A stretch of DNA of 63,476 nt, the filler included, from Hyphochytrium catenoides (lineage: Eukaryota; Protista; Hyphochytriomycota): assembly GCA_900088475.1 (NCBI GenBank). It is 5 parts of 5 records of this genome, joined end to end, with 100 filler letters (N's around TTAATTAATTAA, not from the genome) between each part and the next. Parts side by side here need not be neighbours in the genome. Positions count along the whole stretch, not along the records: positions 19,380 to 43,756 come from FLMG01003846.1; 4 more parts are not named here. One strand, given 5' to 3'. The notes under the pieces are model-generated. The model saw nothing but the letters and a program-made list of their open reading frames with translations, had not been told where the DNA came from and did not search any database. Both the position numbers and the translations under genes were made by a program. Within the stretch, counting starts at the first letter, position 1. The number at the start of each line of letters is the position of its first letter. This document shows, one piece after another, positions 27,788 to 38,815 of this stretch.

Positions 27788-28636
27788 TTAGAAGGCCTCG
27801 GCAGCTCCAGGTGCCTTTGGCCGAGGACTATGCTGAAATTCGTCGACTACTTGTTTAAGCGCAGCAATATCCATTAGATCAATCTCCTTGGGATAATGGA
27901 CCTGTCTGGATTGTGTGGGTTTAGAAGACTGAAGTGGCGGTGGCCTGTTGGCGTCGTTCCGAGTAGCGGTTGATATTTGCGCTTGAGGCCGGGTGACAGC
28001 TTTCTGAGGGTTAGGGACAACGCGTCGCACCGTCGCAAGGTCCATTAGGTCTATCTCCTTGGACGCACATCTCTCCCGGTTCTGTGCAGAAGCATCTTGA
28101 GCCATTGATCCATTTGCTCTGGAAGCTCTTATACCAGGCGCATGATAGTAGGTTTGTTCCTGTCTTGGACGCCGATCTATTTGATGGGCCACGTGAGGTC
28201 TAGCCGGATGCCTTGTAGCTCTTGGGGATTGTGCACTGAGGCTCGGAGCTTTGGAAGTATAGGGATGCGGCACCTGAGAACTCCTACTGGCTGTCCTTGA
28301 GGGCATCGAGGTATAAGAATGCCTTCTAGGCTCAAAGTAAGCTTCATCAGACGGAAGAAACTCGTCTGAAATGTCGCGCTCATAGTATTGAGAGCCGCTG
28401 GAATAGCGAGACTCTATGTTGCTGTGACCACAATGGCCATTTGACTGCAAATATTGTTCATATTCCTCTGGAGGAAGGATGACAGGTCGTTCCACACTTT
28501 GGGAAGGTCGGTAGTTCCGTGGGTGATAGTCATATTGGTTGAAAGGCGTCTGTGTGTGCGTTGATTGTGGTCGATATTTGTCCTGGTGACTCCTGATGGT
28601 ACCTGCTGTCATCAAGTCAATCTCCTTTCCACTCAT
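27788..28636 (-). CDS. Hypothetical disordered protein with three KEIDLM motifs
   Basis: 282-aa ATG-initiated ORF, S/P/R/Q/Y-rich, with KEIDLM repeated three times using different synonymous codons. Confidence 0.7.
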   Translation of the reverse strand: MSGKEIDLMTAGTIRSHQDKYRPQSTHTQTPFNQYDYHPRNYRPSQSVERPVILPPEEYEQYLQSNGHCGHSNIESRYSSGSQYYERDISDEFLPSDEAYFEPRRHSYTSMPSRTASRSSQVPHPYTSKAPSLSAQSPRATRHPARPHVAHQIDRRPRQEQTYYHAPGIRASRANGSMAQDASAQNRERCASKEIDLMDLATVRRVVPNPQKAVTRPQAQISTATRNDANRPPPLQSSKPTQSRQVHYPKEIDLMDIAALKQVVDEFQHSPRPKAPGAAEAF

Positions 28637-31368: not shown

Positions 31369-32076
31369 TTATACTATTGGCTGAGCCTTCATCTGGAAGT
31401 TCTCGGTGCTGCGCTGAGGAAACTCATCTGGACATACCACCCAGAAAAATAAGGCAGCTAGAGCTCCACCCATAAATGGACCAAAGATGTAGAGATGGAG
31501 GTGATCCCACCCTCCGTGAACGCATGTAAGACCGAAGCCAACTGCGGGGTTGAAGGCACCACCACTAATCGGGCCACAGGAGTAGGCGCTGAATAGAACG
31601 GTCAAACCTATTGCTGCGCCAAAGAAACCGTTGCCTTCCTGAGACTTAGTGGTAGCAGTATGCAAGACAACAGCCACGAGGAAGAAGGTAGAAATGAGCT
31701 CGGCCATGAAGGCCTGGCCGTTGGTGGCTTCATTGCTTGGGTTGATTGGTACAGTACGACCGGTAATTGCGGCTCCCATGGCAGCACCGACAACGCCCCC
31801 TAGACACTGAACGAGGCAGTAGATAAGAGCCGCCACCACGTTCAGCTTCCCGCGGAGCACGATACCAAGGGTCACGGCAGGATTATAGTGAGCGCCGGAA
31901 ACATGGCCTCCCATCCAAATCATCACCATAAGACATATTCCAATTGCGAAAGGGGCATAATTTCCAGCTGTTGCCACCGACGTCTCAACGGTGAAAACTA
32001 GAGCAAAGGTACCGACAAACTCTGTCAAGTACCTGGCTACAAACTTCCTCCAGAGATGAGGCACTTCTTGGCTCAT
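31369..32076 (-). CDS. Aquaporin / MIP-family channel, intronless
   Basis: 235 aa with EFVGTF, SGAHYNPAVT, AELISTF and SGGAFNPAVG; six hydrophobic segments. Confidence 0.95.
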   Translation of the reverse strand: MSQEVPHLWRKFVARYLTEFVGTFALVFTVETSVATAGNYAPFAIGICLMVMIWMGGHVSGAHYNPAVTLGIVLRGKLNVVAALIYCLVQCLGGVVGAAMGAAITGRTVPINPSNEATNGQAFMAELISTFFLVAVVLHTATTKSQEGNGFFGAAIGLTVLFSAYSCGPISGGAFNPAVGFGLTCVHGGWDHLHLYIFGPFMGGALAALFFWVVCPDEFPQRSTENFQMKAQPIV

Positions 32077-35000: not shown

Positions 35001-35467
35001 TGCACCACTTTCCTGTCAGGTCAATGAAACTACCAGTTACTATTCGGGACACATAAGTCAATTATCAAGGATCGGAATGTTCGTTACAAACGCTCTCCAG
35101 CCCAATGATGAGCCTTCAAAAGCCACGCCTCCTCCTTAGTCCTTTTGAATAACAGAGCAGGCGAAGAAAGCTTCTCTAACGAAGGCAGCGCGGATGGAAA
35201 CGTGACCCAGGATTAATAGCCCTCAATAGGTACCATCATTGGCTCCAACTCGTGACGGAAAGGCTAAAGGACCGACTTGCCTGGAGGTGCAAGCTCAGTC
35301 TTGGATTGATATTTGGCCATTCCAACATCCTATAGATCCCACTTAAACAAAGGAATGCGCTCACAAGGCTGCCTGCGCTCCTACCGGATGAAGGTATGGT
35401 CAAAGTGGGTGGATTAAGTTGTGAAGACTACATGCCCGCCTAGGAGAAGAGTGCTACCCGTGTGAGC

Positions 35468-37468
35468 ATGATGGCCAAGGCGGCGGTAACACCATTCGCG
35501 AAGAGGACTGGTGGACGAAGGCAAGCCAAGGCCCACCTTCACGCTGACCAGTTGACACGTCTTGGGAGGCTTCGTATAAAACTTCAAGGCTATTTGCGGG
35601 GAGTGCAAGCGGAGGTCTTCTTTGGTGGTTTGACAGCAATTTATGGGATTGTGGTTCTTCTAGAACTATTACTGACAGAATCATCGGCCCCCGACGATGT
35701 GGCAAGGTATTTAAAGGAAAGGGTATTCCCGCCACTCAACGTGGTGCTTGTTACGGTGCTCCTAGCCGAAGTCTGCCTCAAAGTTTTCGCCTACGGTCAC
35801 GTTTACTTGGTAAAGGCATGGAACGCCTTTGATGCCATGGTAGTGGTGGCTTCTTTCATCCTTACTTACCTCCAACAGTTCAACCTCATATCCGGGGCCG
35901 GTGTGTTCGTGATTATTCTTAGACTGTTACGGCTTTTCCGCCTCGTCGTTGTCTTTGAAAGAATCAAGTCGAGGGCAAGGATAGTGGCAAACATTGCGGG
36001 AGATGAGGGCATTGGTACCCCTCTCGAGAAGGTTCTGGCTTACCTAAGTGAGATGTCAGATATGCAAGGCTTGCACCCAAAATATCATGACAACATCTTC
36101 TATATTATGGAAGTCATCAAGTCCAATCGTCTCTACCAGACATCTGAAGATGCTCTGGATAAACAAGATTTGGATGACGAGACCAGAATGTGGCTGAAAG
36201 GTACAATGGCGCCTGCACCTCAAATGCTAAACCCTAAGACCGCAAAGCTGCTAGGGATCGAGATGCCAGAAGGAAGTGGAGGGGACGCTAACAAGAGCAT
36301 AAAGAAAAGCATGCCAAAAGCTCTAATCAAGAAGGCGCTTAGCCTGAAAAATATTCCTGAGCTTGTGGTTGAAAACGAAGCGGAGCTCACAGAAATTCTG
36401 AAACTCAGTGCGTCCTGGGACTTCAATGTTCTCGCCTTACAGAAAGTAACGAAGGGCAACACCATACGGCACCTTGGTGTATTCCTTTTCAAAAAGCATA
36501 ACCTCTTAGAGGAGGTGAAATGTGGCATGGAGGTGCTAATGTGCTTCTTTAAGGGCATTCAGGATGGATACAAGGCAAACCCTTACCATAATGCGATCCA
36601 TGGAGCAGATGTGATGCAGACGATGAACTATTTCGTCTGTCTACCAGACATCGCGAGATGTCTCACCCCAATGGACAAAATGATTGCCCTAGTGGCCGGT
36701 GCTATCCATGACTACAAACACGATGGCGTTAACAATTTATTTCACGTCAACTCACAAAGCGAGCTGGCGCTGCGATACAACGATGTTGCTCCCTTGGAAA
36801 GCATGCACGTTGCTGAAGCATTTGCACTGATGAGGTCAGGACAAGGGGAAGCTAACATTCTGCGCAACCTTCCACCCGACCAAGCGAAATACTGCAGGAC
36901 GTTGATGATAGAGATGGTCCTTTCAACTGATATGTCCGTTCACTTTGAGAAGACTGCTCTATTTAAGACCAAGATCGTGCTATCGGAGCAAAATGAAGAT
37001 GATCAAGGACGCTTCAAGCTGCCAGAGGAACAGGACAAACGGCTTTTGCTAAAGTATGCTCTGCATACTGCCGATGTATCTAACCCTGCCAAGAATTTGT
37101 TCCTGATGCTGTCATGGACCCAACGCGTGGTGGAAGAGTTTTTCCAGCAGGGAGAGAAAGAAAAGGCACTCGGTCTTCCAATCTCTCCGTTTATGGACAG
37201 AGCTAATCCGAATCTGATCAAGCAGCAGTGCGGTTTCATCGACTTTATCGTAAAGCCAATGTATGAACTCTGGGGAGAGATCCTGACAGAAGTGAAAAAG
37301 GGGCCATTAGCGAATGTAGAGAAAAACAAGGAATTCTGGAAGAGCTTGCCGGACACGACAAAGCCATCAGACTTCCCTTCTTTACTAGAAAAGTATTGCC
37401 CTGCTGAAAGTGCCCAGTCCGGCATTTATAGTGTGGACGAGCGACCACAAGATCCAGCTAACGGCTAA
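35468..37468 (+). CDS. Voltage-sensor domain (S1-S4) fused to a class I 3',5'-cyclic-nucleotide phosphodiesterase
   Basis: One uninterrupted frame (aa numbered on the 668-aa ORF from 35462). aa ~51-167 form four TM helices: S2 LAEVCLK, S3 WNAFDAMVVVASF, S4 ILRLLRLFRLV. aa ~319-630 are the PDE domain: WDFNV, YHNAIHGADV, AIHDYKHDGVNNLF, LESMH, STDMSVH, LHTADVSNPAK, EEFFQQGEKEK, QQCGFIDFIVKP. The true N-terminus may include upstream exons. Confidence 0.93.
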   Translation: MMAKAAVTPFAKRTGGRRQAKAHLHADQLTRLGRLRIKLQGYLRGVQAEVFFGGLTAIYGIVVLLELLLTESSAPDDVARYLKERVFPPLNVVLVTVLLAEVCLKVFAYGHVYLVKAWNAFDAMVVVASFILTYLQQFNLISGAGVFVIILRLLRLFRLVVVFERIKSRARIVANIAGDEGIGTPLEKVLAYLSEMSDMQGLHPKYHDNIFYIMEVIKSNRLYQTSEDALDKQDLDDETRMWLKGTMAPAPQMLNPKTAKLLGIEMPEGSGGDANKSIKKSMPKALIKKALSLKNIPELVVENEAELTEILKLSASWDFNVLALQKVTKGNTIRHLGVFLFKKHNLLEEVKCGMEVLMCFFKGIQDGYKANPYHNAIHGADVMQTMNYFVCLPDIARCLTPMDKMIALVAGAIHDYKHDGVNNLFHVNSQSELALRYNDVAPLESMHVAEAFALMRSGQGEANILRNLPPDQAKYCRTLMIEMVLSTDMSVHFEKTALFKTKIVLSEQNEDDQGRFKLPEEQDKRLLLKYALHTADVSNPAKNLFLMLSWTQRVVEEFFQQGEKEKALGLPISPFMDRANPNLIKQQCGFIDFIVKPMYELWGEILTEVKKGPLANVEKNKEFWKSLPDTTKPSDFPSLLEKYCPAESAQSGIYSVDERPQDPANG

Positions 37469-37772
37469 GGCTGTGAGCCCATCCACTGCTGAGTGGAAGT
37501 AGCCATCAGGCCTCTCCTTGTTGGCCATGATAGATCTTTTTAACAAGGAAAGTGCTTGTAATAATACATGGACCATCGCAACCTCCTAGACGCAACCAGA
37601 GTTTTCGATGACCTCATGGCCCGGCGAATTCTGTTGGTCGGTGTACTTACACTAACGGACATAATATGCTCTGCCATGGCCATTGGGGCTCGTTCTCTGC
37701 CTTCTTTAGCCAGATCTACTGATGCTGCTTGCCGGCCCGATGAGCTTCATCTATGGAGAATCGTCAAGAGTC

Positions 37773-38815
37773 TCAATCACTCCAAATCCACCCTCGAAGG
37801 GCGGTTAAGAGAGAGAAGAAGAGATTGATGATGTCCAGGTAGAGGCTAATGGCCCCATAGATATAGTCATCCTCCCCTACGATTGTGTCACATGTGCGGC
37901 AGTGCATCTGATAAGCAAACGATTGTAAAGTCATATCTTGGCCATGCTCTTACCTGAGCGATTGATAATAGCCCATGTGTCGTAAATAATATAAGCAGAG
38001 AAGAGCAACGAGCCCAAAATTCCGTACCACATCCCTGTTTGCCATCCCAGCAAGGAGTAGACGAGGCCCCAGCCAACCAAAAGAAAGAGGGAGCAAGAGA
38101 GCCCCATGCCCAGAAAGGAGAAGTCACGTCTTGAGGTAAGAGTGTACGCTGTAAGACTCTGGAGCAAGAGCATTCAGCTAATCGGACGAACAGCAGCGTA
38201 AACCACTTCACCTACCACAAAGACTATGAGTGTGATTCCTGCAGCTTCCGCCAACAAAGCTATCATCCCTGCCGAGGCATAAGCAGCGCCAATGGTTCCT
38301 ATAGTGTACGCCTCAAGGAACGTCCAGGCACACAACAAGTAGGCGTTGTATGGGTAGGTTTGACTGTAGAAGAACATAGCTATCAACAGCAAGAGACTCA
38401 ACACCATCCCTTGGCGTGGAGTTGAGAAGGTTAAGTCAGACTCTAAGGATCAGAGTTGGCCATCATGAAAGCAAGACCTACCTAGAATCGCGAAGCTGGG
38501 GTGCTGAAGAACGAAATGTCTCGCTGGTTCGACGATAACGAAGAAGGCACATACTCCCGCTGTAAGAAGAAGCTGGTGGTACGGAAAGGGGTCAGCTCGT
38601 AAAGAAACAGAATGTGACTAAGGAATCGCCGCTACCTGGAGGCTAAGTATGCTATATAGCTTCCTAAGATACGCTTTTAAAGACATTTGCTCTGTCAACC
38701 GCCAGTATTCTTGAGGCAAGAAGAACGAGTTCTGGTTGTCCCCGCTTTCCCGACCATAGCCATCCTCAATGCTGCCGTACTTGACGTCATCTCTGCGCTT
38801 CACTGGGTCATCCAT
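37773..38815 (-). CDS. Bax inhibitor-1 / TMBIM (LFG/GAAP-like) membrane protein, multi-exon
   Basis: YLRKLYSILSLQ|LLLTAGV, YPYNAYLLCAWTFLEAYTIG, DFSFLG, FSAYIIYDT, DYIYGAISLYLDIINLF. Both aspartates of the TMBIM di-Asp motif are present; short GT-AG introns. Confidence 0.92.

Follow-up and report, generated by a model that had tools for sequence, protein, structure and literature searches.

To our knowledge, the voltage-sensing phosphatases (VSPs), such as Ci-VSP and TPTE/TPTE2, are the only established enzymes driven directly by a voltage-sensor domain (VSD). Stand-alone voltage sensors that lack a pore are also known in Hv1 and TMEM266, while the rhodopsin phosphodiesterases (Rh-PDEs) of choanoflagellates provide a direct route from a stimulus to the breakdown of cyclic nucleotides, and the adenylyl cyclases of ciliates and apicomplexans carry channel-like membrane modules. 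Here we describe a gene of the protist Hyphochytrium catenoides (assembly GCA_900088475.1), which lies at positions 35468-37468 (+) of a stretch of 63,476 nucleotides made of joined genome parts (hereafter, the window), within the 24-kb piece that comes from FLMG01003846.1 (positions 19,380 to 43,756). As judged from its sequence and its structural models, the encoded protein is an integral membrane class I phosphodiesterase (PDE) with a stand-alone pore-less S1-S4 sensor, both halves being contained in one reading frame. We will refer to this protein as VSD-PDE.

The likeness of VSD-PDE to the VSPs resides in its general plan, with a pore-less S1-S4 domain placed N-terminal to a cytoplasmic enzyme and a basic stretch following S4. 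The effector, however, is an HD-type class I PDE for a soluble messenger, instead of the PTEN-like lipid phosphatase plus C2 domain of the VSPs, and Pfam finds neither of these two domains after the sensor of the window protein, but PDEase_I only. The linker is also much longer, composed of a helical module and a disordered spacer, and the S4 helix carries fewer charges. With the Rh-PDEs of choanoflagellates, the window protein shares a membrane sensor N-terminal to a class I PDE domain, although the sensor is a four-helix VSD instead of a retinal-binding rhodopsin, and no rhodopsin family was matched by Pfam in the window protein. The channel-like adenylyl cyclases of ciliates and apicomplexans belong to the same group of organisms and couple a module of the Ion_trans type to the metabolism of cyclic nucleotides, but they synthesize cyclic AMP (cAMP) and include a pore-like region, whereas the window protein would break cyclic nucleotides down and holds the sensor only. 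Hv1 is marked by an Asp in the middle of S1, which acts as selectivity filter, and by the S4 motif R-x-W-R-x-x-R. It resembles the window protein, as TMEM266 does, in being a stand-alone pore-less sensor, and in the case of Hv1 also in its three S4 Arg and its place among the top single-domain matches; in contrast, the window protein is devoid of the acid in the middle of S1, the S4 Trp motif and the C-terminal coiled coil, and bears a large enzyme domain. Proteins of the same architecture, family and tree do exist under automatic names only, such as SDRG_09416 and SPRG_07987 (oomycete "Phosphodiesterase") or A0A0G4HX23 of Chromera velia, and the same PF00520+PF00233 pair is reported for TgPDE4 and TgPDE16, which we compare through their description in PMC8809380 alone. 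In short, VSD-PDE is a class I PDE with a voltage sensor and falls outside the families of the VSPs, Hv1, the Rh-PDEs and the channels.

An earlier note on this DNA, made from the sequence alone, had presented the fusion as independent of splicing or of a contig join, and this view has held. The ORF (open reading frame) listing, the orthologues, which can be aligned along 90-97% of the protein, and the allelic differences all describe a complete single-exon gene (35468-37468, +) of 666 codons plus the stop, which runs from the first ATG at 35468 without internal stops. An alternative GTG start at 35462 would extend it to 668 codons, and on the upstream side the frame is bounded by the in-frame stop TAG (35441-35443). 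The gene is represented in Logan contigs of three sequencing runs that bear the same organism label: one of 3094 nucleotides, from another run, covers positions 35200-37700, and one of 1580 nucleotides, from a third run, covers 35927-37506, both of them including the junction between the sensor and the PDE. The spanning contigs show no indels inside the ORF, the single one found being at 37537, past the stop. Among the 32 allelic differences listed inside the ORF, 28 are synonymous and 4 nonsynonymous, with 27 of the 32 at third codon positions, a pattern that points to a coding sequence under purifying selection.

Some further observations concern the same region. The contigs of the other runs diverge by about 1.2% from the window at 35200-37700 (in one contig, 30 substitutions in 2.5 kb), which suggests divergent alleles or strains. 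A contig of 263 nucleotides from an unrelated metagenome run matches this region with one mismatch, and soil and rhizosphere metagenomes carry a few words of it, so the organism is probably soil-dwelling.

The N-terminal half of the protein shows the marks of a voltage sensor. Pfam Ion_trans matches residues 83-172 (E 8e-10, 38.8 bits for a cutoff of 25), through positions 32-118 of the 241 in the profile, that is, its sensor (S1-S4) half only. A Kyte-Doolittle plot gives four hydrophobic segments at S1-S4 and none beyond residue ~157, so no S5-P-S6 pore domain was found by either hydropathy or the Ion_trans match, and the pore domain is likewise missing from the relatives tested with Pfam. 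In the full-length AlphaFold2 model, the membrane domain is preceded by S0, a cytoplasmic helix at residues 19-44 (35522-35599, +), whose basic stretch is partly conserved in the family alignment A1. The transmembrane helix S1 is modelled at residues 46-71 (35603-35680, +), with its hydropathy peak centred at 55-63, and the acidic E49 at its inner end is near-invariant, being kept in at least 90% of A1. S2 spans residues 77-109 (35696-35794, +) and includes N91, E101 and K105. Its motif LAEVCLK contains E101, which is invariant in A1 and in a further alignment, A3, whereas the position of K105 is Lys or Arg in most relatives, and the outer position 91 is Asn in the window protein and Asp in most relatives. 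Hydropathy and alignments place S3 at residues 117-137 (35816-35878, +), with the motif WNAFD (W118-N-x-F-D122), of which D122 is invariant in the family alignments. Finally, a long modelled helix at residues 145-177 (35900-35998, +) corresponds to S4, where RLLRLFR puts an Arg at every third position (R152, with its codon starting at 35921, R155 and R158), followed by the basic stretch ERIKSRAR at its end. Of the three Arg, R155 and R158 do not vary among 27 relatives, and a deletion of three residues in the window protein with respect to its closest relatives leaves the three Arg in perfect register.

Solved structures lend weight to this assignment. From 19 members of the family we built a profile (A2) that covers 210 N-terminal positions, and ran it against all PDB sequences, which gave matches to a mouse Hv1 chimera (3wkv; E 5e-16, 62 bits), the Ci-VSP sensor (4g7v; E 6.4e-15, 58.5 bits), human TPTE2 (9c49; E 3.6e-14, 56 bits) and Hv1 (5oqk; E 1.1e-13, 54.4 bits). 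Nav1.7-NavAb chimeras (E 4e-12 to 3e-10) and NavMs (E about 7e-10) were also matched, together with every repeat of Cav1.2 (best single repeat at E 1.5e-11, 47.5 bits) and the full set of four repeats in further Cav and Nav channels. In the resulting alignment, the S2 Glu/Lys pair of the family falls on the S2 E-x-x-x-K of Cav1.2, the family W-N-x-x-D on its S3 motif, and the S4 Arg on those of S4 in its repeat I. When the AlphaFold2 model of the N-terminal half alone (mean predicted local distance difference test, pLDDT, of 80.7) was compared through Foldseek, the top match was the Ci-VSP sensor 4g7v (TM-score 0.71 by target, root-mean-square deviation of 3.5 Å, 141 columns), and among the matches listed all 50 were sensor-containing proteins, including NavMs, SLC9C1, NavPaS, TPC1, CatSper, CavAb, Nav1.7 and Cav channels. 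The highest single-domain profile scores belong to the pore-less sensors Hv1 and VSP, a difference explained in part by their longer coverage, and a kinship of the window sensor with this pore-less group is only weakly indicated. The pore-less sensor fold suggested by the earlier note thus agrees with the solved sensors and with the predicted model, and the S2, S3 and S4 motifs all appear where it had put them.

Conservation within the family is concentrated on the same residues. An alignment of 27 members, with 22-38% identity to the window protein and a mean column identity of 19%, holds only five invariant columns: E101 in S2, D122 in S3, R155 and R158 in S4, and L222 after S4. Several of these 27 members are N-terminal fragments, so the catalytic columns could not score as invariant. 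In most of them, the inner end of S1 also carries an acid, a basic residue (Lys or Arg) follows the S2 Glu at a distance of four positions, and the invariant R-x-x-R has one or two extra basic residues next to it. The main reason to think that the domain is used as a sensor, and not as a mere anchor, is that the invariant residues within it are those that define charge transfer.

The C-terminal half comprises a class I PDE catalytic domain at residues 298-645 (36359-37402, +). Its Pfam core (PDEase_I, PF00233) covers residues 373-610 (36584-37297) with an E of 3.8e-79 and 266.2 bits (cutoff 24.8), through profile positions 1-232 of 238; the note had expected Ion_trans at residues ~50-170 and PDEase_I at ~375-610, close to what Pfam returned. 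The metal ligands and the invariant Gln that it had pointed out are all present, in the motifs HNAIH (374-378), HD (414-415), TAD (534-536) and QCGF (587-590). No variation is seen in A1 at H374, N375, H378, H414, D415, D488, D536 or Q587, which align with their counterparts in PDE1B and PDE4. A phmmer search against PDB gave the catalytic domain of PDE1B at 8.6e-62 and PDE4D at 1.7e-61, and the profile-profile comparison by hhalign gave E 3.8e-83 for PDE1 and 1.8e-71 for PDE4. In the full-length AlphaFold2 model (pLDDT 76; predicted template modelling score, pTM, 0.57), this domain is mostly above a pLDDT of 90. By its residues and its profile, the domain is predicted to be a catalytically complete class I PDE.

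Between both halves there is a conserved cytoplasmic module at residues 185-245 (36020-36202, +), defined by conservation and by AlphaFold2, with two modelled helices (residues 185-197 and 204-218), the motif NRLY and a D-x-(D/E)-T-x-x-W-L signature. Its conserved positions in A1 are P185, E187, L193, N220, L222, Y223, D236 and L243, among which E187, L193, L222 and Y223 are invariant, and L222 is also invariant in A3. An exhaustive hidden Markov model (HMM) search with A2 as the query, through 1.84 billion representatives, recovered the family as single-stretch matches along profile positions ~10-205, while the other top matches were four-repeat channels aligned over positions ~12-137 only. 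Because the family matches run unbroken over ~10-205, the sensor and the post-S4 module are conserved as one unit, and we regard the module as a candidate coupling or autoinhibitory element. It is followed by a variable spacer at residues 246-297 (36203-36358, +), whose sequence and length change strongly between orthologues, with insertions of up to ~70 residues in Phytophthora (A1). In the full-length model, residues 245-297 stay below a pLDDT of 50, and the spacer is probably disordered.

The possible origin of this module was explored through other class I PDEs. PDE1B is the best match of the catalytic domain, and in the full-length hhalign comparison with PDE1 the alignment reaches upstream to residue 190 of the query, laying the post-S4 module on the N-terminal regulatory region of PDE1. 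The truncated N-terminal alignment alone falls in the same register at a non-significant E of 0.24, and when an alignment of the linker only (A6) was compared with one of PDE1 N-termini only (A7), hhalign returned an E of 8.5e-4 with a probability of 24% over 65 columns. The register is reproducible, but the homology is weak. The N-terminus differs, being a membrane voltage sensor here and a calmodulin-binding helix in PDE1; no match to Pfam PDEase_I_N (PF08499) was obtained in the window protein, even at E values up to 10, nor was a counterpart seen in it of the PDE1 segment beyond the aligned region. A homology of the linker with the upstream conserved regions (UCR) of PDE4 was also considered and rejected, as the hhalign alignment to PDE4 begins only at the catalytic domain (profile position 307).

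VSD-PDE is not an isolated protein. A whole-protein search recovered relatives with the PF00233+PF00520 pair at 36-43% identity and 83-97% coverage from numerous oomycetes (Saprolegnia, Achlya, Aphanomyces, Pythium, Globisporangium, Lagenidium, Phytophthora, Plasmopara, Peronospora and others), and from metagenomic proteins. A search with residues 1-300 alone found no relatives, owing to a word-index limit, and the family came out of the whole-protein and exhaustive HMM searches. The closest relative (P0001, 42% identity) is a single ORF on a metagenomic eukaryotic scaffold of 52 kb. More distant members were obtained by cluster look-up from Oxyrrhis marina (MMETSP transcriptome), another dinoflagellate transcriptome and Chromera velia (A0A0G4HX23), and a Platysulcus tardus transcript carries a complete ORF. 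Apart from Colponema, the full-length distant members tested show Ion_trans over profile positions ~2-125 and then PDEase_I. The exception is a Colponema vietnamica transcript (P0253, 734 residues), with the sensor and post-S4 module at residues 379-569, some 370 unannotated residues ahead of the sensor and no Pfam match to PDEase_I, which would be either a truncated transcript or the same sensor module with a different partner. An ESM Atlas cluster of 248 members has PDEase_I in 100% and Ion_trans in 73% of them, with Ciliophora as the commonest phylum. In public databases, the PF00520+PF00233 pair occurs in essentially all oomycetes, in ciliates, dinoflagellates and Chromera, and in many metagenomic proteins. 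The possibility raised by the note that the architecture might exist as an automated annotation was thus borne out, and more broadly than expected. As several relatives derive from transcriptome assemblies, the fusion is a single mRNA in those organisms, instead of transcripts that separate the two halves.

In a maximum-likelihood tree of this one gene, midpoint-rooted and with some long branches, the window protein groups with oomycetes and the group of P0001-P0004 in a clade with 100/99 support; P0125 and then the Platysulcus branch come next, and the alveolates lie across the root. The tree roughly tracks the split between stramenopiles and alveolates, and fits vertical inheritance. It also suggests that the organism belongs to the stramenopiles, outside the oomycetes sampled. 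On its scaffold (L001), which is compact and intron-poor, the P0001 gene sits between an aldehyde dehydrogenase gene and an SNF2 helicase gene, with no synteny to the window around the VSD-PDE gene.

With a probability of about 60%, we propose that VSD-PDE is a voltage-regulated PDE, where the movement of S4 would reposition the post-S4 module, which in turn would control the catalytic domain. A change of the membrane potential would shift the S4 residues R152, R155 and R158 past the countercharges formed by the S2 Glu and the S3 Asp. This movement would displace the module at residues 185-245, which starts eight residues beyond the modelled S4 helix, and the module would then influence the catalytic domain, its likeliest role being that of an autoinhibitory or docking element that can be removed, in such a way that the rate of cAMP and/or cyclic GMP (cGMP) hydrolysis near the membrane would depend on voltage. 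A direct control of cyclic nucleotide breakdown by the membrane potential gains support from the invariant gating charges and countercharges, and we infer a role of the post-S4 module in the coupling. Regulatory N-termini are known in PDE1 and PDE4, and this analogy lies behind the idea of docking or autoinhibition, which we favour over a rigid lever because the spacer is long, variable and probably disordered.

Several features weigh against a voltage-regulated PDE. The relative arrangement of the domains is undefined at a pTM of 0.57, and a poorly conserved spacer of ~50 to more than 100 residues parts the sensor module from the catalytic domain, its probable disorder speaking against a simple mechanical coupling. 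The PDE1-like origin of the post-S4 module, at a probability of 24% and with no match to PF08499, is a weak lead only. In many voltage sensors, the third residue ahead of the S2 Glu is an aromatic one that serves as gating-charge plug, a common but not universal feature among functional sensors; this position is Leu98 in the window protein and Leu as well in the family consensus, hydrophobic but non-aromatic. In addition, the in-register S4 Arg are only three, and since only two consecutive ones are invariant in most relatives, the sensing charge may be small.

These few S4 charges and the long disordered spacer before the catalytic domain would also fit a sensor relic, kept only to anchor the protein in the membrane or as a module for targeting (e.g. 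ciliary or flagellar) or oligomerisation, with a PDE that is constitutive or otherwise controlled. Moreover, many protist PDEs bear N-terminal transmembrane helices, and varied architectures occur in Toxoplasma (PMC8809380). We find this explanation unlikely, since a mere anchor would not retain E101, D122, R155 and R158 without change among lineages that share 22-38% identity, nor would it preserve the post-S4 module. The same conserved residues bear on the notion of a sensor for which voltage is not the main input, and which relays to the PDE a pH gradient, divalent cations, lipids, membrane stretch or a similar stimulus. By single-domain profile score, the closest solved relatives are indeed the pore-less Hv1, VSP and TPTE2, and sensitivity to Zn2+ and to mechanical stimuli is described for Hv1 and TMEM266; however, what is conserved are canonical charge pairs, and nothing specific points to a site for such stimuli, which makes this option a rather improbable one.

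A sensor with a proton or ion conductance of its own, like that of Hv1, and with the PDE as a passenger or as a regulator of the conductance, could be argued from the three S4 Arg that it has in common with Hv1 and from the matches to Hv1 structures. We consider it very improbable, as the middle of S1 holds no conserved acidic residue (E49 belongs to its inner end, and many relatives have Gln in place of E66) and S4 is without the Trp of the Hv1 motif. Lastly, the frame itself could be an artefact, be it a pseudogene, a contaminant, an unspliced intron taken for coding sequence or the product of an assembly join, a suspicion fed by its being the sole ORF of more than 300 codons within the 24-kb piece and by the short intron of a neighbouring gene. 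Against it stand the independent contigs that span the gene without indels and the 28:4 ratio of synonymous to nonsynonymous differences, which led us to reject an assembly join or a pseudogene, and also the orthologues of the same length and architecture, transcriptome-derived ones included, so that an artefact is hardly credible.

Beyond a voltage-regulated PDE in this organism, a wider proposal can be made, to which we would grant slightly less than even odds: VSD-PDEs would form a second and ancient class of voltage-controlled enzymes, dating at least from the ancestor of stramenopiles and alveolates, in which the sensor takes the place of calmodulin in lifting a PDE1-type autoinhibition, and voltage directly sets the breakdown of cAMP/cGMP in excitable protists that bear flagella or cilia, among them oomycete zoospores, ciliates and dinoflagellates. 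If true, a voltage sensor would be coupled to a second and unrelated catalytic chemistry after that of the voltage-sensing phosphatases, and excitability would be linked directly to cyclic nucleotide signalling, without intervening Ca2+ or channels. The hosts of the family, including ciliates, dinoflagellates and the zoospores of oomycete pathogens of plants and fish, swim and orient themselves by means of membrane potential and cyclic nucleotides, and because their swimming and taxis need both, VSD-PDE is a concrete candidate for the coupling between the two. A compact single-chain converter of voltage into a cyclic nucleotide signal could also serve as a research tool.

Regarding previous literature, no paper on a voltage-sensing, -sensitive, -dependent, -gated, -activated or -regulated phosphodiesterase, nor on a VSD-PDE, was found among 8.1 million PMC papers and 0.36 million bioRxiv preprints, subscription-only literature lying outside this set. 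Within the same bounds, neither a characterised enzyme of this architecture nor any recognition of such a family came to light, in line with the earlier note, which knew of no such enzyme. A paper on Toxoplasma names TgPDE4 and TgPDE16 in passing with the PF00520+PF00233 pair (PMC8809380), and a study of Euplotes genomics describes PDEase_I and Ion_trans as "always adjacent" in syntenic regions (PMC8670190); neither of them recognises a voltage sensor or tests a function. The domain pair was therefore already visible in databases and had been noted in passing. In Phytophthora infestans, the genes of cyclic nucleotide metabolism, with PDEs treated as a class and not by orthologue, are expressed mostly in spore stages (PMC5322657).

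Concerning the genes that surround VSD-PDE, the downstream neighbour is of the Bax inhibitor-1/TMBIM type (37931-38407, -), recognised through two adjacent ORFs that match Pfam Bax1-I at positions 47-109 and 109-178. The match is split by an in-frame TGA at 38174-38176, which sits in a GT...AG intron of 57 nucleotides (minus strand, 38215 to 38159). A variant genetic code was accordingly rejected, as this TGA is intronic and the PDE ORF is free of internal stops. Given the intronic TGA, short introns occur in neighbouring genes, whereas the VSD-PDE gene has none. Among the other ORFs, positions 31369-32076 (-) encode an aquaporin (major intrinsic protein) of 235 residues, with a Pfam MIP match along nearly the whole profile (E 1.8e-38), and an ORF of 282 residues at 27788-28636 (-), with only a sub-threshold match to ECT2_PH (E 0.003), may represent one exon of a RhoGEF-like gene.

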